Assembly: GCF_000143415.4 (NCBI RefSeq) | Contig: NW_003314265.1 | Coordinates: 1,508,446 to 1,572,445 of the forward strand | DNA length: 64,000 bases | Source of the DNA: Selaginella moellendorffii | Lineage: Eukaryota; Plantae; Lycopodiophyta | Direction: 5' to 3' | Part shown: piece by piece, positions 28,380-40,677 of the stretch | Layout of the letters: each line of letters starts with the position of its first letter | How positions within the stretch are numbered: position 1 is the stretch's first letter | Program-made: the position numbers and the translations under genes | The notes under the pieces: model-generated | Seen by the model: the letters and a program-made list of their open reading frames with translations, nothing else | Told to the model about the DNA's origin: nothing | Database searches by the model: none

Positions 28380-29745
28380 ATGGAGTCAGTGACAAATCCT
28401 TTGCTGCCAGAGCCCTGGTACCCGCGAAGAGTAGCGGTAAAATTCCAGGCTAGAGCAGCGAAGCCTAGATTTGTAACTAGGGCAACGATGAGCAAAGATT
28501 TGCTCGTGGTCGGGCCCGGGCGGCTGGGGCGATTGATTGCCAAGCATTGGGCCGAGGTGTGGAAATTGTCGCTAGAATTTCTCCAAATCTTGTGTGTTCT
28601 CGCCAGGAAAACCGGGGTAGCGCTAGAATCGTGGGGCAGACGAGATCCAGCAAAGAACACGACGCATTGCGCGCGCTTGGGATCGAGCCGGTTGTGAGGG
28701 ACGCCGCCACGGCCGAGCGCTTCCCTTTCGTGGTGTTTTGCGCTCCTCCTGACACAGATTACGCGCTGGAAGTGAGGTAAGCTCTTGGGAGATCCTTCCT
28801 CTTGGGAGAAATTGTTCTCGACTTTGCGATGGGATGGATGATAGGAGAGCTGCGGAGAGATGGAATGGTGAGGGATCTTTGCTCTTCACTTCTAGCAGCG
28901 CGGTCTACGATTGCTTCGACAATGGTTTGTGCGTGGAGGTGAGAGAACTAAATTTCTTTTGAAGTGGATGAACTTAAGAACACTATTTTTTTTTCGATTA
29001 GTCCACTCCCACAGTTGCCAAAGGAAGAAGTCCCAGGACTGATACGATTCTAGCTGCTGAGGAGGAGATTCTCAAAGTCGGAGGGAACGCTGTGAGATTG
29101 GCAGGACTTTACATATCCTTTCTCGCAAAGTTCTTCGCGATTTTCGATTGTGTTGCCTTGACTTAGCTCGCCACAGTGCTGATCGAGGCGCTCATGCTTA
29201 CTGGCGAACTTTCCCGGTTATAAAAGAGCGACCGGATTGTTACATCAATCTCATTCACTATGAGGTATCCTTTCGCTCTCAAATTCTTAGTTTCTCGTCT
29301 TTCAAGCGTTTCTCCTTTCGCATTCTCTCGTATTCTTACTTTGTCTGTGTGTTTTTAGGACGCTGCTACTCTGTGCGTGGCCATACTTGGAAGAACGGAC
29401 TTCCGTGGTCGCGTTTTCATGGGCTGCGACGGCACTCCAATGTCAAGGTGGGATTTTTCGTGAAGCTTTTACGAGAATTCGCTCTGGAATTCCTTTGAAA
29501 CAGGCAAGAGATCATGGACGTGGTGTCCAAGAACCAAGAATGCAAGACAACTTTCACTGGTACGAACGACTCAGCTGCTTGTTCTTCCGATTTTGCTGAT
29601 CGAGTTCTTCTTGTGCTGTCAAGGATCTGATGGACCTCTGGGCAAGAAGATGGATGGATCCAAAACTCGCGAAGAACTCCACTGGCAGCCCAGATACAAA
29701 AGCTTCGAGGAATTCATGAAGCTTCACTCCGCTGTGACTGTGTAA
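28380..29745 (+). CDS. Chloroplast NAD(P)-binding Rossmann-fold (atypical SDR/epimerase-like) protein; contains a U12 intron
   Basis: Transit-like N-terminus, DLLVVGPGRLG, VVFCAPP, LLFTSSSAVY, VRLAGLY|SADRGAHAYW, INLIHYE|DAA, WQPRYKSF. Confidence 0.88.
29113..29174 (+). other. U12-type AT-AC intron (62 bp)
   Basis: 5' ATATCCTTT, branch-point-like GCCTTGAC ~12 nt before the 3' CAC. Removal joins AGLY to SADRGAH in frame. Confidence 0.93.
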
Positions 29746-30544
29746 ACATTTGCTTGCTCCGGCCGTAGATTGTTGAAATCCAACGGTCTGCGCTTGGACA
29801 CGTTGACTTTTTGTTGGCGCGAGATGGTTACAAACATCGGACGGTCTCATCAATCTTCTCGGCATCGACGGACGAGAGTGCGACCACGTGGACCTCCGCC
29901 AGCTGCAGGATTTGTGGATTGAGCGGCCGGGATGCGCCAAAAGAAATGCATGACGGGTCGCGGCGACGTGCCGGATCGCGCCGTCCGATTCGCCCCCATC
30001 CAACGGCCACGACATTCCCTGCTCTAGCAAAAATGCACAACGCAACACCCAGAACAAAGGAAGACACCACAAGAGGAGAAAGAAGAGTTTTGCGAAGGAA
30101 GCAAAGCAGCGAGGGCAAGGGGCTTGCAAGGGCGTCGCGCGGTGGCGTGCCCTGGCTATGGCGAGGGTTTAGAATCGTCTTGCGGACGATTGAGGGAGCC
30201 GCGGCGCTCATTTGCCAATCCGGATAGTTTGCTCGTCGCAGGTATGGTGGATTCAGATTCATCCGCCAGCGCTCCTCGTCTCCATCGGCGCTCCAAGCTG
30301 CATTGAAAGATCCCAAAGAAAATCTGGTTGCCAGGGAAACCATTTCTTCCCCAGGGCTTGGGATTCGCCATCGGGATCTTTGCGCGGATCGATCTTTCTT
30401 GCCCGGCCGTGCATCGCCGGGTGATGCATTCCTCGGGCGGATTGTAGGATCGAGTCGGATTCCCAGGGCCAAGACCAGCGGCAAGGCACGCACAGCCGAA
30501 ATATTCTGGCAAGGGAGGCTTTGCAATTTGGGATCGAGAGGGCG

Positions 30545-32644
30545 ATGGCCGCGGATCGCTACTACTGCTGCAGCGAGGATGTGTGCGAGGAGAAATTGGC
30601 ATTCCGGAGAGCAATGGCAAGGCGGGCGGAGAAGGTCCAATTCGACAAGCATCCTTCGTCGATCATCCAAGAACCGACGCAATCGCAGGAGGTCGCCGCG
30701 ATTCATCAAGAATCGCAGCAGCGGCAGGAGCTTTTGGAACCATCGGCGTGGAGGAGCAAATCCAGTGCCGCCGATGGGATGAATTCTTGGAAGATGGCTG
30801 CAAGACGGGCTATGGTGGTGGATCATCATCGTCCACAGCAACACCGCCAGGTCGGGGATGATCAAGAGCCGGTCATACCGATCTCCAATCCTGGGGCAGT
30901 GGCAGCGACGGTGGTACCAGCAGCGAAGCAGTACCACAGAAATCTAGCAGCGGCAGTGGTGATCCAAGATCCTCGTCCCACCGGCGTTACCGTGCCTCGC
31001 AACCCGGTAAACGCAGTGGTGCGTCACCCCGCCGCCGCGGTGGTACCGCGCGTCCACCGCGGTGTCACCGCGGTGCTTCCATCCTACGTCGCGGATATCA
31101 ACCTGGGCAGCAAGAGGTACCGCGAGAGTATGGACTACGCTCACTTGGGCTGCAGGCATTTTGTTCCTTGCGACGATCGCGACGATCTGGAGGAGGCCAA
31201 GCCGAGCGCCACGACGGTGTCGACGATGGTCTCGGTGCCCAGCTCCAATCAAAGGGCGATGGCGATCAAAGCCAAAGTCGGGGGAGCCGTTTTGGCAAGG
31301 TCGATGGTTCCGGAGGATCGGGATCAGTACAGGCAGGGGCAGGAGAGCGCGATCCAGGTTTGCGGTTTTCCGGGCAGATCGGGTGTTGGGCATTCGCAAG
31401 ATCGTCATCCAAGGGCGGATCCTTCTGGGGTTAAGAAGAGCAAGGAGGTGGAGAAGGAAGAGGATCAGAGCGCCGGCGCGATGGGAATTGATCGGCAGGG
31501 CGGTATCGCGAAGAAGGTGGATGGCTGTTCTTCGTCGGGTGAGGTGGCTATCTCCCAGGTGACAACTTGCGGCGTGGAGAGCTCCGACAGTGGCAATGGG
31601 TTGGATCAGGAGCTTGGGCAGGGGGAGGAGCATCAGCATTTGGCGAGGAAGAGCAAGAGGAAGAAGGTGATGGAGGAGAAGTTCTCGGGGGATGCGAGAG
31701 CTAGGTCGGGCGATCAGGCCCTGGCAGGGAAGTTGGAATTGGAGGGCGTGGGCGACGAGATGGATGATCCAAACCCTGCGGAGGCGATGTCCGAGGCGCT
31801 GGACGTGCTGGCGGAGGCTGCCATTCAGGCGTCGTCGTCGCCACCACCAGCAGAGGATTGCAGTGTGGAGATGGTGGAGATCTCCAGCGACGAGGAGAAG
31901 GTGGATGAATTGGGGAGGAGGATCTGGAGGAAGGCGAGGTTCGTGCATGGCGAGATCCCGTTTGTGCAGAAGAGGGTCGTGCGGAGGTGCCCGCGGCCGG
32001 GCAAGGTGGCGATGCAATTGGAGGTGGGATCGGATTGGGGATCCGGCAAAAGGCCCGGGGTGCGAGCGTCGCAGCGCAGGATTGAGCAGCAGCAGCAGCA
32101 GCAGCCGCGCAAGCTCCTCATGGCGGATGCGTTTGAGTACGGTGTGGTCCGAAAGAAATCCAGGAATGAGGATCACCAGGAGCATCGGCCGGGCGTCAAG
32201 AGGAATGCTGCTGCTGGCGAGCTCGCGAATTCGAAGAAGAAGAAGAAGGCGACGACGACGACGAAGACGAAGAAGGGCGCCGGGGTTCATCAGAGAAAGA
32301 GGGACCTGAGCACAGTGGTGAGGGAGTCCGCGACGATTCTCGATCATCGCCGCCATCTCCAGCTCGTGGGCGATGGCGATGGCGATGATCATGGAGAGCA
32401 CCTCGAGGCCGCGGCGCCGGTGCCAGTGGTGGTGGTGGAGGAGGAGGAGGAGCAAGAGGAGGAGGAGGAGGAAGAGCAAGAGGAGGAGGAGGTGCAAGAT
32501 CATGGTGGTGGCGACGACGCATTTGGTGGTGCCCTGATTCGATCCAAGCGTGGGAGAAGCCAGAATCTGCCGCTGCGGTTCCAAGGCTCGGTGCTGGGGA
32601 ATTGGAAGAAAGGGAGGAAGAGCAAGCCCTTTGGAGCAAGGTAG
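30545..32644 (+). CDS. ~700-aa low-complexity/disordered protein ending in an ATX3/4/5-type motif (gene A)
   Basis: Long ORF with purine-rich coding bias: EALDVLAEAA, polyQ, polyK/T, polyE, then LIRSKRGRSQNLPLRFQGSVLGNWKK. Start uncertain. Confidence 0.8.
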   Translation: MAADRYYCCSEDVCEEKLAFRRAMARRAEKVQFDKHPSSIIQEPTQSQEVAAIHQESQQRQELLEPSAWRSKSSAADGMNSWKMAARRAMVVDHHRPQQHRQVGDDQEPVIPISNPGAVAATVVPAAKQYHRNLAAAVVIQDPRPTGVTVPRNPVNAVVRHPAAAVVPRVHRGVTAVLPSYVADINLGSKRYRESMDYAHLGCRHFVPCDDRDDLEEAKPSATTVSTMVSVPSSNQRAMAIKAKVGGAVLARSMVPEDRDQYRQGQESAIQVCGFPGRSGVGHSQDRHPRADPSGVKKSKEVEKEEDQSAGAMGIDRQGGIAKKVDGCSSSGEVAISQVTTCGVESSDSGNGLDQELGQGEEHQHLARKSKRKKVMEEKFSGDARARSGDQALAGKLELEGVGDEMDDPNPAEAMSEALDVLAEAAIQASSSPPPAEDCSVEMVEISSDEEKVDELGRRIWRKARFVHGEIPFVQKRVVRRCPRPGKVAMQLEVGSDWGSGKRPGVRASQRRIEQQQQQQPRKLLMADAFEYGVVRKKSRNEDHQEHRPGVKRNAAAGELANSKKKKKATTTTKTKKGAGVHQRKRDLSTVVRESATILDHRRHLQLVGDGDGDDHGEHLEAAAPVPVVVVEEEEEQEEEEEEEQEEEEVQDHGGGDDAFGGALIRSKRGRSQNLPLRFQGSVLGNWKKGRKSKPFGAR

Positions 32645-32940
32645 TGGTCCATGGCATGGATGGATTTTCACGCGGATGATAGAGAGGTGGTATGTAGAAA
32701 TCGTGAAATCGTGTACAGGGAAGGAGGAGGGAGCTACGCCACCACCAACACAGGCCCGGAGAGATCAAACTTCTTCTTCTTCCTCATCTCTTTCGTTGTT
32801 TCTCGTTTGGAATTTTTGTAGCGATCATACCAACAGATTTGAAAGATACAAGTTTAAACCATTTGCAAGGAATGCTTCTCTGATCCATACACAAATCTTC
32901 CTTCTTGATCGATGTTTTTGTTTCTCTCGCTTGGTATAAT

Positions 32941-34791
32941 TCACTTGGTTTCTTTCCTCGTTGGCTTCTTCACCTTGTTTACTACCACCGAGTCTCGTAG
33001 CCTCGTCGGTAAAGCTCGGGGTCTTCCACGCTTGGATCGAACGAGTGGAGCTTTCGTGACAACGAGAGATTCGTCCTCTTCTTCTTCTTCTTCCTCCTCT
33101 TGTTCTCCATCTCCTTGCTCTTCCTGTTCGTCATCGCCTCGTCTCTCTTTTCGGCCAGCTTTGATCGCGGCTCGAGCAGCTGCTTGTTCTTGGTGGCCAT
33201 TTCGAGCTTTCGACTGGCTTCTCCTCGGCTGCTTTGGTTCCGGCTGCTGTGGCGTGCTGATCGCAGTGAGAGATCGCTTTTTCGTTGACGTTGGCCTTGT
33301 CGTCGTCGTCGTCGTCCCCACCGTCGTCCCCTGTTGAGGGTGGTGTCCATTCCTGCCCTTTGGCGGAGCTTGCCGGCGATGGCTTGCGACTGGAACGATC
33401 TGGTTCTGCTCCTCCTCCGAGCTTTTCTTCCTAAACGCGCTCTTGGTATGCCTGGAGGATTTCTTTTGTACAATCCAGACACCCGTGTGCACGAAAAACG
33501 CTCCCTTTCGTTGCTGCTGCTGCTCTTGTTGCTGTTGACGATCCTGTTCCTGCTTTTGTAAGCTTTCCTGCCTGGCCGAATTTCTCGTCGGTTTCGGAGC
33601 TCGCGAGGCCGATGAGTTCCGAGTGTTGGCGGTTTGAGCCGGACCATCCTGAGCTCCAGCCCCGGCGTCCCGCGCTGACGATGAAGTATTGAGCTGAGCT
33701 CCAGAATTAGATATCCTGGACCCAAGCCTGGTAGCCTTGGCCGGAGCATCACCCTGAAGTGCGTTCATCAGAAGATCCAAAGGCCTCGTTCGCAGTTTCC
33801 GGCCAGAAGTGCTTTTCCCTGCTTTGGCTGGAGATTCCGGTACCAAGCTCTTGCCTGCCAGGCCACTCGGTTTGAACCCTCCGTTCGATTCAGTGGCCAC
33901 GGCTGTTTTCCCAGTCTGTGAGTCAGAGCTCCCTTTCTCAGATGCCGAATTCGTGGAGCTCAAATGCTTCACGGTCGAAACTTGCGGTGGAACTTGGTCC
34001 TGGTTTGGCAGCTCTTCGTCAGAAGAGTTACGTAGAATCCTTCCAAATGCCAACGGAGGACTGTGAGCGAAAACGTTGGTCGCTGGAGGCTTGAGGAATC
34101 CGGCACCGGATCCAAAACTCACACTCCCAAGCCCAGAAAACAGTGGAGTCGGCGGCACTGCCTGCTGCTTGATAAAAGGTGACGGAAGTTTGCCACCCTG
34201 ACTATCTTCCTCTCGTCTTCCACTGCTGGAAAATGGTGACGACGAGCTCGCTTGGAAAAGCTTGGTGGGATCTGCAAAGGCCGTTCTAGGGGCCGGCATG
34301 AGTTCCTCGTCCGTCGTCGTGGAGAGATCGTTCCTTTCACTGTCCAGATGATGTGCATTGCCGGAAGAAGAATTCGTCCGTGACCCCATTAAGTTGGAAA
34401 GATCACTTGGGCTGCCCCTCCCACCATTGTGGAAATGGTTTCCCTGTACTCGCTGGCCACTGCTATCATCACTCCTCTTCTCTCCAGCGAGAAGCAAAGC
34501 GCTGGGTTCTTCTTGTTTGCACAGTTGCCACTCGTCTATCACCGGCGGAGCTAGCGGGCAATTGGGCTTCATTCCAATGGGAGGCCTCCACACCGCGGGG
34601 GCTTGCCTCTTGGAAACCATGGCTTCTTCCTCGGCACCGGAGCTGGATTGATAGCGCCCGCCGCCGTGGAGCTCCTCCAAATCGGCCGCCTGGCGCTTTC
34701 CCTCGGTGAGCAGATGCAGCAGCTCGCCGGAAGGCCGCCATAGCTGCTGCTGGTATTGCTCCTGCTGCGCGATCACGCGACTCTGCATCAT
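32941..34791 (-). CDS. ~616-aa low-complexity/disordered protein ending in an ATX3/4/5-type motif (gene B)
   Basis: Long ORF: RPLDLLMNAL, polyQ, polyT, polyE, then PLVRSKRGRPRALPTRLRDSVV. Confidence 0.8.
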   Translation of the reverse strand: MMQSRVIAQQEQYQQQLWRPSGELLHLLTEGKRQAADLEELHGGGRYQSSSGAEEEAMVSKRQAPAVWRPPIGMKPNCPLAPPVIDEWQLCKQEEPSALLLAGEKRSDDSSGQRVQGNHFHNGGRGSPSDLSNLMGSRTNSSSGNAHHLDSERNDLSTTTDEELMPAPRTAFADPTKLFQASSSSPFSSSGRREEDSQGGKLPSPFIKQQAVPPTPLFSGLGSVSFGSGAGFLKPPATNVFAHSPPLAFGRILRNSSDEELPNQDQVPPQVSTVKHLSSTNSASEKGSSDSQTGKTAVATESNGGFKPSGLAGKSLVPESPAKAGKSTSGRKLRTRPLDLLMNALQGDAPAKATRLGSRISNSGAQLNTSSSARDAGAGAQDGPAQTANTRNSSASRAPKPTRNSARQESLQKQEQDRQQQQEQQQQRKGAFFVHTGVWIVQKKSSRHTKSAFRKKSSEEEQNQIVPVASHRRQAPPKGRNGHHPQQGTTVGTTTTTTRPTSTKKRSLTAISTPQQPEPKQPRRSQSKARNGHQEQAAARAAIKAGRKERRGDDEQEEQGDGEQEEEEEEEEDESLVVTKAPLVRSKRGRPRALPTRLRDSVVVNKVKKPTRKETK

Positions 34792-35618
34792 TCTCACCGG
34801 GAATCGCAGTAGCCCTGCCCTCCCTGCCCTGGCCTCCTCTAGCGCATCGATCTGCTGCTAGACAATGTGGCTGCTATCTAAGAACCCTAGACCTGCGCCG
34901 CGCATTTGGATTTGGGAACGTACACTGGATATTTTGGATGCGATTCCCCCCCCGGATGGAGAGATTGCCGCGCCGGATCAAGGAGAAAACCTATCGCCGA
35001 TCCAGGTGCTCGGCTCAATCGCCAAGGACATCGTCGTCCCACTGCAACAAGCAACACACACATGACAAGGCCCGTTGGATGGCCGATCGAACGGCTGGGC
35101 GCTGGTGCAAATCATGGCCGTCGATCTAGACTCCCGGAGAATAAATCCGACGAACGGCGGCAACCCGCGGGCTCGCGCAGATTCAAAGGCCACGTGGCGA
35201 TCCGGGATTGGTCTCACGGCTGGGGAATCCTGTGGCCAAACGTCCATCGTCTTCCCCACAAAGAAATTTAGATAGATAGGCCATAAGCAGGAATTCGCGA
35301 GCTAGGGCGTCCGGGGAGTGCGTTCGTGCTGCTGCGAGCTGGGGCGCGGACGTAGCGGAGGCGATTGCGCAGCGGCGCGATCGAGGTGCGTGGTCGATCG
35401 ATCCAAGAGCTTCGTAAAGCCCTAACCCTAACCCTAACCATTGTTCTTCCTCTGGACGTGACGCGAAGCCTCGCCTCGCCTCGCCTCGCCTCCAGATCGG
35501 ATGATGGAATCGGGCGTCTGGATCAGCGCGTGAGGAGGAATTCGCAGGGATTTTCAAGCTGGAGACGCCATCGGCGCTTTGCTCGTCCCCGGCGTCGGAA
35601 TGCTGGCGACCCCCGGAC

Positions 35619-35651
<33 letters not shown>

Positions 35652-35678
35652 GTTCTAGGGGCAGGATTTCAGCAGGGA

Positions 35679-38600
35679 ATGGCACAGCAAGGGGCGGTGC
35701 CAGGATTCCAGCCGGGAAATTCACAGGGGATACCGCAGGGTAGTGGTGTTAGTGTCGTCTCACAGGGGATACCAGCGCCGAGTAGTGGTGTTCTACATCC
35801 AGGGCAGGGATTAGCGCCGACGCTGCGGACTCCAGCGTTCCAATTGCCTCCCTATCCTCTCCCAGCTGCGTGTCAAAGGATGACGACCCAGACGATGCTC
35901 GATAAGATCAGCGAGTGTATGCAAAAGCTACATTCCAAGCCGGTTCTAGCTCCAGCTCCAGCTCCGGGGATGCCATGGCCGGGGATTCCAGGGACGCCGG
36001 TGTTCTTCCGCCCAAACGGCCGAGTCGGGGAGACTGTTCATGTGGCGCGAAATACCATGATGCTGCCATTGGACCCCAGGTATGCTGGAATTCCCCGGGG
36101 GCCGTCCGGCCCAGTGAAGCAGGCTTTGAATGGCGTCGTGAGCGCCGGGGCTGTAGCGGCGAAGCAGCAAGTGGTGAATGGAACCAGTGTTGGTGCCATG
36201 TCTCTGGAGCGCATGAGGATGAATTGCCTCGAGGGCACTCGGATGGTGACGGTTCCAACACCGCAGAGTGGTTTGCCGAAGCCGAGAGGGAAGAAAAGGG
36301 CGAGGGAGGCGTCCTGTGGCTCGGTTTGTGTGAGCAATCAGCAGTGCCCGTTAGAGAATCCGGTGGGGAAGACGAAAATTCTGATTTTCCATCAAGACGG
36401 CAGCAAGGCGAGCAAGGTGGTGGATTTCATACCCGGCACAGGGAAGTGCACTGGTGGAATCCCTTCAACCAAGATAGGCCAAGCTCCTTCTCCGGACGGT
36501 GTTACAAAAGTTGATAGCGAGGCGTCAAGGGATGGCAAGCGGCAGAGAGTGGAGAGCAGGGAGTGCGTTCTAGCGCGGATGCTGATCAACAATTATCCAG
36601 CGGCCGAGAATTTGTTACTAAGTGCGGTCCATAGAGCAACAGGCTCAAGCGTAGCGGAAAAAGTCGCTGAAGACGACAAAAGGGCGCAGGTGCCTGGCAC
36701 CAGAGCTGCCGGTAAACTCCAGTCGAAGCGAGCCGAGGCGGCGGCGAGCAAAGCCGCTGAGGAACTGAAAGGTGGGAAGAAGCAGGAAGCAGAGTCTGTG
36801 GAGTCTTCGGTATCCAAAGAACCGGAAGGTCCCCTTATTCAAACGAAGAGAGGCAGGACTCAAACCCGTCCAGTGTGGCTTCGAGATTCGGTAGTGGAGC
36901 CTTTGAAGAAGCCAAAAGACGAAGCTAAGACGGCCAAGCGGGAAATGACCCCGAAGTGTAAGAAACCAACGAAGGCACGCGCGGATGCAAAAGCTACTCA
37001 GCCTGTGAAGCGAGCAAAGGACGTGGAGAGTGACTCAGAAGACGATGAGATATCAGCTCGTAAGACGCAGAAGATGAACTGCTTGTTATCGACAAACCAA
37101 GAATTTGACGAGCCGGAGGCCCAAGATTATGACAGTGATGCAAGCGACATGTCTGTGGCAACAATAATGGCTCAGCATCTAGCAGAGAAATTTGAGGAGG
37201 GTGTCATTGTGTGGGCAAAGTCTGGAAAAAGAGCCGATCTCTTTTGGCCGGCAAAGGTTGTGAAGTATCCACCAGCGGCAGTTCAAAGTTCTCGTGTCCC
37301 AAGCTCCGTCTGCGTGATGTTCTTCGGGACTGGAAAGCAGCGGGTAAGCATTTACTTTTTCCAGTCTCCAGTCCAGATTCTGACGTGTTTTATTTTCTAA
37401 AAGGAGTTTTCGTGGGTTCAAGGGAGCATGATATTTCCATTCATGGATGAGCTCGAAAGGTGTGTCCTATCCTTTGCAAGTCTTCTCAATTCAATTGATC
37501 ATGTGCCAGGTATCAAAATCAAACTTTGCAAGAAGATGAAGAAAAAGCCTTCGGCTCTGCAATGGAGGAGGCTATACTTGCGGAATCTGGTTTTGAGCAA
37601 GAAGAAGTTGAGAAGCAGCTGGTTGTCTGTGAAGCTAAACCCGAAACATCAACTAGTGATACCGATCAGCCTCTTCTTGAAGACGTTAATAATTTTGCAG
37701 AAGAAGATCAGGTACGTCTTGAATATTCACTTTGTCGTGCCTAAGAACGGATACCTGAACAGCACTGCAGCGTGTGTACAGAACCCCGATCCTTGTTCGA
37801 ACAAGTTTCTTGGGTAAGAAGTTTCTGTCTTCCTGGATTCCTTTTCTAATTAACTTTTTTTTTTCAGGTCCGTTGTGGTGCTTGTCAAGTCTGGATGCAT
37901 GCAGCCTGCGTAAAAGTTAGCAAGGTGCTATCGAAGGTATCTTGTGATATTTATTTTTGTCAATCTCACTTTGTCAATCCGGCAGACTGCTTCTTCTTAC
38001 ACTTGTAACATATGCAAAAGTAAAACACGGCAAGGGTAACAGATTTTTCTCGTCTTTCACATATTGCATTGCTAACCGGAGTTCAGGATGCTGGCGGAGT
38101 GGAACACCTATCTCATCCCTGAATGTTTAATTGTTTACTGCGGAACAAAAGAAGCTGAGTATCGACCAAAACGCCACGAGTAAGCTGGAATAACTCTGTT
38201 TATTGTGCTTGATTTTCTCAGTTTTCTTATGTCCAACAGGGTCTTTTGTCAATGTGAACTATGTGGAGATGGTAAATTCATGCCCCCATCAGAGTGGGAA
38301 CGGCACGCAGGCTGTAAAAGCAGACGGTGGAAATCAACTATTAAGATAAAAACCACACAGCAGTCTCTTTACTTATGGGTGAGTGTAAGGGGCTTGGAAA
38401 CATATAATTCTGAAAGAGCATACACTTGCAGCTTCAAAGAATGATTGAGAGTGGCGCACCAGGCATCGGCTACAACTCGCACAATGTTCGGAAGCTTGCG
38501 ATGAAGGATTTCACCGCTTGCCTACAGGGTAAGATATTGCGTTTCAATTTTACTCCAGTCTTCATACTTTTTCTTCCTTTGTTAGAGCCGTACACACCGG

Positions 38601-40677
38601 TAATAGTCAACTGGACGTCAGAAAGATGTGCCGTGTGTCGTTGGGTTGAAGATTATGAATATAACAAGATCATCATTTGTAACAGGTATGACACATTTTC
38701 TCACTGTTCTATTCTTAAACTCGCGAGCAGGTGCCAACTAGCTGTGCACGAGGAGTGTTATGGGGTCAAAGCATCCGAAATAAGTAGTTCCTGGGTGTGC
38801 CGAGTCTGTCAAACTCCTGACATAGAACGAGAATGCTGCCTTTGTCCAGTAAAAGGTACTTCGTCATGCCTAGACTCTACCGCGATAAAACGTTCGTGAT
38901 TTTGCCACAGGTGGTGCGCTCAAACCTTCTGATATTCCTGGATTTTGGGTCCACGTTACTTGCGCCTGGTTCACGCCAGAAGTAGCGTTCAAGGATATAA
39001 ATAAGATGGAACCGGCGGTTGGTCTGCAAGGGGTGGACACCACCCGTTTTTCTCAGGTGTGTTCTCGTTCTGTTTGAACCAGAACAATGCCAAACCTTGT
39101 GTGTGTGACAGGCATGTGTAGTTTGTGAACAAGTGCACGGAGCCTGCATACAATGCACCAAATGTCGCACCACATACCATCCTATGTGTGCCTCAAGGGC
39201 GGGATATCATATGGAGGTAAAAGCGCTCAGCAAGAGATGGCCGATAACTAACGGGACTTGTTTCAGCTGCAAATATCCAAGAAGAAAAATGTACCGTCTA
39301 CGAGGATGCTATCATATTGCGCTGCACACAAGTTAAGCTGCCTCCGAATCAATTTTACTTCGCTAAGCACATTTAACTCTTGCAGAACTCCAAGCCCTGA
39401 TGCATTTCTCCAGTACAATATTACGCAAAAGAAGCCTCCAGCAACCAAATTTCCACTGGTCCCTGTCCCCACAGAAGAAGTTCCCTGCGTTGAGACGGAA
39501 AGGCTAGGATGCCTTCTCGCTGCCAACGAACTGTCTCGGAGTCTTGAGATCTCGTTTGAAAAATTCAAGCGCTGGAGGATGCTTCCTGCTGCCAGATGCC
39601 AAGCATACAACCCTGATGATACATCTCACAAGGTACGACAGAATTGACATTGGTCGTGTGTTTCTAATATGTGTTTGTGGTGGGATTCTAGAAACCGACT
39701 GGAGCTGGGATAGCTTACAGGGTGATGGGATACACCAAGAACTCCCTAGACTGGATCAGCTCACTGAGGGTTTGAGAATTTTTCAGACCTGTCCTCTAAA
39801 TTCTGATGGTGTACAATGCACAGGACTACCTAGAACCAGATCATGGCGAAGTAATGTCTATGAAGGAGCGTCTGTCGTTTCTACAGGTTCGAACACGTCT
39901 AAATTTCCAGGATATATATGTGGCCGTGCCTGGTGCAGAAAACTGAGAAAACGAGAGTTTGCTTTGGTAAATCAGGCATCCATGGATGGGGACTGTTTGC
40001 GAGGCGATACATCAAAGAAGGAGAGATGGTAAATCATCGCCCTGCGTACTATTACTTCGAGTTGATTGCTAAATGTCGTTCGCGATGCCAGGTGGTGGAA
40101 TACAGAGGGGAAAGGATTCGCCGTAGCGTGGCAGACTTGCGGGAAAAGCGTTATTGCTTGGAAGGCAAGCACTGCTATGTAAGTGTACAACCTCAGCCTT
40201 CGACTTTTGCTCCCACTCTAACTTTGCATAGACTTGGATTTATAAAACCAGCTGTTCAAGATAAGCGAAGAAGTCGTCATTGATGCAACGGAGAACGGCA
40301 ACATTGGACGGCTGATCAACCACTCGGTATGTCACTCTTTCTTCCAATGATCATCACGATGTTTATCTTTGTTTTGTTTCCACAGTGCGAACCAAACTGC
40401 TATGCGAGGATTGTGAGCGTAGAAGGCGAAGGCGAGAGCCACATTGTGCTGATTGCACGTAAAGACGTCTCAGTCGGCGAGGAACTTACGTGAGTGAGAG
40501 AAGATCCAGTTGGCAGAAAAAAGAGAGAATTAGATCTCTCTTCTCTTCTCGTCTCGTGGTTTTCTAATCGATTCTCTTTGGTGTGGCCTGTGTAGGTACG
40601 ATTATCAATTCGACAAGGAAGACAAGAAGGTCCTGTGCCTGTGCGGCTCGTCACGGTGCCGACGATTCATGAACTAG
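35679..40677 (+). CDS. Trithorax-family H3K4 methyltransferase, ATX3/ATX4/ATX5 clade (PWWP, PHD, SAND-like, PHD/ePHD, SET, post-SET)
   Basis: [62 protein letters not shown], Win-like [52 protein letters not shown]. Confidence 0.95.

Follow-up and report, generated by a model that had tools for sequence, protein, structure and literature searches.

A module of short conserved blocks shared by ATX3/4/5-type histone methyltransferases and an unnamed family of SET-less plant proteins, with two members beside an ATX gene in Selaginella moellendorffii

The N-terminal region of ATX3/4/5-type histone H3 lysine 4 (H3K4) methyltransferases holds a module of conserved short blocks in otherwise disordered sequence, and the same module, without the PWWP, PHD and SET domains of the enzymes, defines a separate and unnamed protein family in vascular plants. 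The blocks are an amphipathic helix (LDLLxxAx), a basic block found in early-diverging lineages (FFxH..KKRVxRRAKSAF) and a 28-residue motif (PxVR[ST][KS]RGRxQxLPxR[FY]xDSVxxPWKK). Two old, divergent and expressed members of the SET-less family, here called A and B, adjoin an ATX gene of the lycophyte Selaginella moellendorffii within a 64 kb window, the whole stretch of DNA analysed (contig NW_003314265.1, positions 1,508,446 to 1,572,445). On balance it is probable that the SET-less family shares, or competes for, a presumed docking site that the old common module would give to ATX3/4/5 enzymes.

Gene A (30545..32644, plus strand) is an intron-less open reading frame (ORF) of 699 amino acids (aa) and gene B (34791-32941, minus strand; protein P0001) an intron-less ORF of 616 aa; each encodes a disordered, SET-less carrier of the three-block module. 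The ATX gene (35679..40677, plus strand) encodes an ATX3/4/5-type H3K4 methyltransferase of 1262 aa. A and B are arranged tail-to-tail, and B and ATX head-to-head. A comparison with the public annotation (GCA_000143415.2, scaffold GL377569.1) gave matching limits and protein lengths for all three genes, and the order A-B-ATX is kept on the second haplotype of the same assembly (GL377592.1). On that haplotype B is annotated as a 674-aa protein with an extra upstream exon (L003:12385-14688), the 616-aa ORF being otherwise identical, so that the start must be wrong in one of the two models.

The ATX product matches the Pfam families PWWP, PHD, extended PHD (zf-HC5HC2H) and a C-terminal SET, in that order, and the gene gives collinear tblastn matches with Physcomitrium ATX5 as well as matches with another ATX-type protein. 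FYRN/FYRC (DAST), the mark of ATX1/2, is not among the Pfam families of this product, nor among those of the 15 ATX-type matches scanned; the gene is typical of the ATX3/4/5 clade. Its PWWP domain begins in exon 1 (37203..37490, plus strand; Pfam PWWP at aa 509-554 of exon 1, with tblastn support). Exon 1 ends at 37343, with the donor GT at 37344, and the stop codon was read in the sequence. The SET region (39930..40671, plus strand) is located by tblastn high-scoring segment pairs to the SET regions of P0030 and P0129 and by the Pfam SET match of the annotated product. Neither A nor B has a match to any Pfam family, even at E<=1, hence no PWWP, PHD or SET, and both end just past the motif.

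The 28-residue motif (block 3) is present in all three genes at the positions first reported for it. It lies at 32531..32614 on the plus strand in A (ALIRSKRGRSQNLPLRFQGSVLGNWKKG), at 32965..33048 on the minus strand in B (PLVRSKRGRPRALPTRLRDSVVVNKVKK, with an RGRP core) and at 36831..36914 on the plus strand in ATX, about 120 aa upstream of the PWWP match; the C-termini of A and B read ALIRSKRGRSQNLPLRFQGSVLGNWKKGRKSKPFGAR and PLVRSKRGRPRALPTRLRDSVVVNKVKKPTRKETK. For each pair of proteins the motif is the sole significant local BLASTP match (A/B 7e-4, B/ATX 4e-5, A/ATX 1e-3). In a six-frame translation of the 64 kb, the pattern [PA]L[IV][RQ][ST]KRGRxxxxPxxxxxSV has exactly three matches, all inside 4.4 kb. 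The stretch of 16 nucleotides (nt) earlier noted as identical in A and B (TTCGATCCAAGCGTGG) is indeed there, with two matches against 0.01 expected, and is part of a 56-nt inverted repeat that is 71% complementary. Outside the window, the motif of A aligns with the angiosperm SET-less family (hhalign probability 96%, E 5e-9) and with moss ATX5 (tblastn E 8e-4), and that of B does the same (hhalign E 2e-7; tblastn E 5e-4).

A profile of the three window peptides, run on 1.84 billion representative proteins at a cut-off of E<=1e-3, returned 148 proteins in two coherent classes, with a best E of 1e-17 and with A and B among the top matches. The motif is short and Arg/Lys-rich and the pairwise E-values are modest, as would be expected if the similarity were an effect of chance or of composition in basic low-complexity tails. 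Against this stand the 148 matches in two coherent protein classes, the three collinear blocks that beat their shuffle controls (below) and the lack of the pattern anywhere else in the window, which together leave such an explanation with almost no probability.

The first class consists of ATX3/4/5-type enzymes of liverworts, mosses and angiosperms (e.g., from the liverwort Calypogeia, Physcomitrium ATX5 and Prosopis ATX5); in the proteins measured, roughly 110-210 aa separate the motif from the PWWP domain downstream of it. Every long match scanned has the PWWP-PHD-extended PHD-SET architecture or is a shortened fragment of it. Angiosperm proteins with the ATX3/4/5 architecture, which include one that NCBI names ATX5, have the motif consensus PPLVRTSRGRVQVLPSRFNDSVLDNWKKE, in agreement with the Arabidopsis ATX3/4/5 motif given in the first-pass annotation. 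Several ATX proteins from outside the angiosperms (among P0004, P0010, P0015, P0061 and P0084) have weak, sub-threshold matches to Pfam TDBD (Tify domain binding domain) at corresponding positions between the PHD and the extended PHD.

The second class consists of SET-less carriers of about 130-610 aa that end just past the motif, match no Pfam family and are all named "hypothetical" or "uncharacterized". They range over ferns, Ginkgo, Welwitschia, monocots and eudicots (e.g., Gossypium TYH70058.1, Bauhinia KAI4322372.1, Adiantum KAI5067743.1, Ceratopteris KAH7388032.1 and Ginkgo Gb_14384), so the stand-alone carriers for which a profile search had been proposed exist well outside the lycophytes, in ferns, gymnosperms, monocots and eudicots. 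A later profile search for the range of the family added only fern proteins. The family was not among the Brassicaceae protein names looked up, which does not establish its absence there. Neither Pfam nor the solved structures contain a match to the motif, and its ESM Atlas neighbours are all "hypothetical protein" clusters of Streptophyta. A whole-protein word search with B returned only B itself, low-complexity words filling the candidates, and is uninformative about relatives. One carrier, P0003 of Papaver somniferum (571 aa), has the motif twice, at residues 250 and 533, with near-identical flanks; this looks like a tandem duplication or like a gene model that joins two neighbouring genes.

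The SET-less family is defined here by PxVR[ST][KS]RGRxQxLPxR[FY]xDSV within about 45 residues of the C-terminus, an upstream LDLLxxAx helix and no PWWP, PHD or SET; fern- and gymnosperm-type members also have, between helix and motif, the basic block FFxH..KKRVxRRAKSAF. The C-terminal motif, the helix and the basic block are all present in A and B, and the three domains are all absent. In angiosperm members the order is an N-terminal helix, DLNLRLG (an LxLxL EAR motif), an acidic stretch, an LDLLIEAAxxISG helix and the C-terminal motif. Of 156 C-terminal carriers, 83, mostly seed-plant proteins, have an EAR motif, a pattern that occurs in 8% of shuffles. The motif precedes the helix in 50 cases against 5. 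In two rosids the SET-less gene stands tail-to-tail with a DEMETER-like DNA glycosylase gene (RRM_DME, Perm-CXXC), 0.7-2.7 kb apart (Gossypium tomentosum, L002:10001-20738; Bauhinia variegata, L004:10001-19485). This neighbour is probably why some UniRef entries name the small protein "HhH-GPD base excision DNA repair family protein"; it was not seen beside the carriers in Coptis, Musa and Protea.

The remaining blocks were scored by scans with position-specific scoring matrices (PSSMs) and shuffle controls; hmmsearch reporting thresholds pass nothing for profiles that short. In each of the three Selaginella proteins, a PSSM built from 10 non-angiosperm ATX helices places block 1 N-terminal to the motif (P ~0.003-0.007 each). 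Its best site is SEALDVLAEAAIQASSSP in A (aa 416-433; 31790..31843, plus strand; 28/5000 shuffles as high), TRPLDLLMNALQGDAPAK in B (aa 335-352; 33736..33789, minus strand; 37/5000) and aa 307-324 of exon 1 in ATX (36597..36650, plus strand; 17/5000). The helix of A is also picked by a PSSM of angiosperm SET-less proteins (7/2000 shuffles as high), and a PSSM from the angiosperm SET-less helix alone has sites in many ATX proteins, most of them from outside the angiosperms, where 0-2 of 1000 shuffles reach the score. The sites that it finds in ATX proteins of non-flowering plants read SLDLLVEAASG, SLDLLVDAVQVA and similar and lie 100-160 aa upstream of the motif; several angiosperm ATX proteins have the site YYPLHLLGEVAAG. 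When the helices of fern and gymnosperm SET-less proteins are aligned with those of A and B, an L and an A are invariant.

The Mad1-type SID is an amphipathic helix that binds the PAH domain, with the consensus hydrophobic-x-x-hydrophobic-hydrophobic-x-A-A-x-x-hydrophobic, and LDLLIEAAxxI agrees with this pattern. A helix-profile search of solved structures, where such peptides are mostly shorter than 20 residues, found no Sin3/Mad partner chain at E<=10. Reading block 1 as a Sin3-interaction helix thus has no backing from the structure-sequence search and is kept as a lead only.

Block 2 was scored with a PSSM made from fern and gymnosperm SET-less proteins, A and B excluded. It is found at KARFVHGEIPFVQKRVVRRCPRPGK in A (aa 463-487; 31931..32005, plus strand) and at GAFFVHTGVWIVQKKSSRHTKSAFR in B (aa 430-454; 33430..33504, minus strand; PSSM score 30.6), with 0/2000 shuffles as high in either case. 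BLASTP matches the block of A to Ginkgo P0042 (E 0.027) and that of B to P0042, P0065 and P0050. This is the VQK[RK] element of the first-pass annotation; in Ginkgo and fern SET-less proteins it reads FFxH..QKRVxRRAK, in register with A and B. The similar layout once proposed for A and B therefore divides in two: the LDxL helix and the VQK[RK] block beat shuffled controls and are conserved in other species, and the polyQ, polyT and polyE runs are species-specific low complexity. The block 2 PSSM also matches the liverwort-type ATX proteins P0004 and P0005 and the 388-aa P0017, which may be an ATX N-terminal fragment; it finds no block 2 in Selaginella ATX or in angiosperm ATX. Block order is collinear throughout (helix, block 2, motif), A and B carrying all three blocks and Selaginella ATX the helix and the motif.

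Motif identities within the cluster are 14/28 for A-B, 12/28 for A-ATX and 14/28 for B-ATX. Each of the three motifs is nearer to motifs of other phyla (up to 18-20/28) than to the other two, and that of Selaginella ATX is closest to liverwort ATX (19-20/28 identical). Since the three are no nearer to each other than to other phyla, the genes are old paralogues rather than a recent local copy; and since A and B have all three blocks, as liverwort ATX proteins do, they are old SET-less paralogues of the ATX3/4/5 N-terminal module. In a genome of about twenty thousand genes (our own estimate), it is very unlikely that both Selaginella SET-less genes adjoin ATX by chance, and the simplest reading of the adjacency is that partial tandem duplication gave rise to them.

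Four small assemblies, each from a different study and transcriptome-like in size (24-57 Mb), supplied contigs that were aligned to positions 30000-35999. B is covered by one unspliced contig in all four runs (roughly 32883-35049); the cover of A is piecewise, and continuous over 30000-32402 in one run. No contig joints occur anywhere in the region. Both genes are therefore covered by contigs, which answers whether they are transcribed in so far as the RNA label of the contigs, a guess, is right. Two ATX contigs of 3857 and 4009 nt, with starts at ~35480-35620, suit, by their lengths, a spliced message (coding sequence 3789 nt) better than unspliced DNA. Contig depth is zero or minimal at ~35050-35200 in all four runs, B contigs ending at ~34929-35049 and ATX contigs starting at ~35356-35503. 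These contig ends and the depth minimum fall in the divergent B/ATX intergenic region (34792..35678, strandless; 887 bp between start codons), which is probably a bidirectional promoter.

Differences between the contigs and the window amount to 5 synonymous and 7 non-synonymous changes in A and 10 and 5 in B, none of them within a motif. In the haplotype comparison, which is not independent of the contig differences, the ratio of non-synonymous to synonymous substitution rates (dN/dS) is 0.35 for A (5 synonymous, 6 non-synonymous) and 0.12 for B (10 synonymous, 4 non-synonymous). The excess of silent changes is clear for B. Between the haplotypes, too, the motifs are unchanged. A and B are transcribed without introns and are under purifying selection, with the qualification that the RNA label is a guess and that the counts for A are not significant by themselves.

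These data bear on the possibility that A and B are functionless, decaying leftovers of partial duplications of ATX exon 1. They adjoin ATX, are mostly low-complexity and match no domain, all of which such leftovers would do. Yet the ORFs of 616-699 aa are intact on both haplotypes, B has its synonymous excess and contigs cover both genes. A and B also keep a block 2 that is absent from the neighbouring ATX and present in fern, gymnosperm and liverwort proteins, and their motifs are as distant from one another as from those of other phyla. Decay is accordingly held to be very improbable.

Several details of the contigs concern the ends of the transcripts. The stop codons of A and B are convergent and 296 bp apart (window 32505-33066), and one B contig extends to 32505, beyond the stop codon of A; this may be a natural antisense overlap of the two transcripts at their 3' ends or a merger made in assembly. 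In several runs there are contigs whose match to A stops or starts at 31665, 31920, 32234 or 32370, in its GAG/GAA-rich part, and which continue in unrelated sequence; they could come from other loci with common low-complexity repeats or from alternative forms of A. A contig of 3387 nt runs from 32402 back to 30000 and then about 960 nt farther upstream, toward a neighbouring gene of 302 aa (28380-29745) that has no Pfam match. It could reflect a long 5' untranslated region of A, read-through or a merged assembly.

AlphaFold2 models of the angiosperm SET-less family consist mostly of disordered chain with a confident N-terminal helix, an LDLL helix at a predicted local distance difference test score (pLDDT) of ~70 and, for the motif, a small hairpin with a short helix (pLDDT ~70). 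In the N-terminus of Prosopis ATX5 the motif is drawn alike (pLDDT 57-78), beside a confident PWWP domain. Since short modelled elements sit in disordered chain, the module looks, in these models, like several short linear elements that would fold when they bind.

One partner for such elements could be the enzyme itself. The module would then act within the ATX molecule, as a regulator bound to its PWWP, PHD or SET part, and the SET-less proteins would switch the enzyme on or off in trans. The position of the motif upstream of PWWP (at the distances given above) agrees with this, and the undetectable in vitro activity reported for ATX3/4/5 (PMC13084085) would suit autoinhibition. The AlphaFold2 model, with low confidence between motif and PWWP, cannot tell whether the two pack together; this explanation appears quite unlikely.

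In the favoured reading, that of a shared docking site, the module would dock on a nuclear surface or partner used by ATX3/4/5 as well. Carriers without SET might then occupy the site without methylating, as competitors, and EAR-bearing members might act as adaptors that take TOPLESS-type corepressors there, EAR motifs having an established link to TOPLESS-type corepression. In Selaginella, B and ATX probably stand under one divergent promoter; if the spacer is such a promoter, enzyme and competitor could be made together. The first-pass claim of a portable docking element stands as regards portability, a deeply conserved element being common to ATX3/4/5-type enzymes and SET-less proteins and now extended to three collinear blocks; its docking is the conditional part. 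The richness of blocks 2 and 3 in Arg and Lys makes the nucleosome surface or DNA a candidate partner, together with the enzyme's own reader domains and JMJ24/26/28, which are reported to co-purify with ATX enzymes (PMC9824250; PMC13084085). Mimicry of histone tails or of nucleosome binders (the H4 basic patch, CENP-C, HMGN, LANA-type arginine anchors) was considered and dropped, since a search of solved structures with the motif profile returned, at E<=10, neither a histone nor any such binder.

A number of observations weigh against a shared docking site. The basic blocks 2 and 3 would also suit a plain nuclear import signal. The module is not identical across the three Selaginella proteins, ATX being without block 2. 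Neither LxLxL nor DLNxxP, the EAR motifs sought by regular expression, is found in A or B, and the angiosperm N-terminal helix SKAQxCLxKILxxIS scores no better in them than in shuffles (PSSM). The RNA label of the four runs is guesswork, and an intron-less stretch could show no spliced joint; the polymorphism counts are small. Finally, a look at the 10 kb around SET-less carriers in seven genomes, one carrier each, showed no ATX gene; the genomes are those of five angiosperms (Gossypium, Bauhinia, Coptis, Musa, Protea) and two ferns (Adiantum, Ceratopteris), 10 kb being narrow for large fern genomes. The linked control module for H3K4 methylation that was first proposed is consequently not general.

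Part of this evidence suits another explanation, by which the blocks are a nuclear-import and general chromatin-tethering signal and the SET-less proteins work in pathways unrelated to ATX3/4/5, having common descent with the enzymes and no common site. KRGR and KKRVxRRAK resemble classical basic import signals, carriers outside Selaginella show no ATX linkage in the survey just described, and the SET-less proteins have extra parts of their own (the N-terminal helix and the EAR motif). The conserved positions, however, include non-basic ones (Q, LP, [FY], DSV, PW) as well as the helix, kept from liverworts to eudicots in both families, which exceeds what an import signal needs. A signal of this sort is a serious alternative that is nevertheless judged unlikely.

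A more ambitious form of the docking proposal holds that the module is a land-plant-wide docking device that targets ATX3/4/5, that its SET-less carriers in vascular plants, about half of them (mostly seed-plant proteins) with EAR, antagonise H3K4 methylation by sitting at that site and taking TOPLESS-type corepressors to it, and that the A-B-ATX cluster, with its divergent B/ATX promoter, is a surviving picture of the origin of the family beside its parent gene. Taken as a whole this is tentative, and doubtful rather than probable.

The N-terminal module was not found described in the ATX literature consulted (PMC3457860, PMC13084085, PMC9824250), and the literal motif strings led to no relevant paper. 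Neither the module nor the SET-less family was found in Pfam, solved structures, source names, the ESM Atlas or the literature, which is no proof of being unpublished. In recent work, the targeting of ATX3/4/5 is linked to DNA motifs and transcription factors (PMC13084085). How these enzymes find their targets is still being worked out, and the module and its catalytically empty carriers offer two testable handles. Should members with an EAR motif indeed compete with the enzymes for one site, H3K4 methylation in plants would be subject to a dedicated brake that has escaped notice; that the SET-less family has neither a Pfam family nor a name is one possible reason for this.

Compared with the ATX3/ATX4/ATX5 (SDG14/16/29) clade, the ATX protein of the window has the full PWWP-PHD-extended PHD-SET architecture and the N-terminal motif. 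A and B share the N-terminal blocks of the clade; unlike its members, they are without PWWP, PHD and SET and end just past the motif. Like the rest of the SET-less family, A and B have the helix followed by the C-terminal motif, and they have block 2 in common with its fern and gymnosperm members. In contrast, angiosperm members are 200-350 aa long and have an N-terminal helix and an EAR motif, both missing in A and B, which are longer and rich in polyQ, polyT and polyE runs. Block 3 also recalls the AT-hook (core R-G-R-P), in that B reads KRGRPR, a literal AT-hook core. A, however, has RGRS and ATX has RGRT, and the family consensus, KRGR[SNA]Q or SRGRVQ, is without the proline; with RGRP confined to B, the motif is not read as an AT-hook.

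The nearest functional parallel is with plant microProteins, among which miP1a/b bind CONSTANS and recruit TOPLESS, and LITTLE ZIPPER acts on HD-ZIPIII. As in those systems, what a truncated relative retains of a large regulator is an interaction element alone, and many SET-less carriers also have a corepressor-recruiting motif of the EAR type. A and B differ in that they are not micro (699 and 616 aa) and in that they keep short linear blocks rather than a folded dimerisation domain. The term "microProtein-like" in the first-pass annotation is thus supported by the blocks as regards derivation from the ATX N-terminus, fails on size (616-699 aa) and is used as an analogy only. Truncated relatives that compete with a larger regulator are known from plant microProteins, and the arrangement proposed for the SET-less carriers of the ATX3/4/5 module is accordingly not new in kind.

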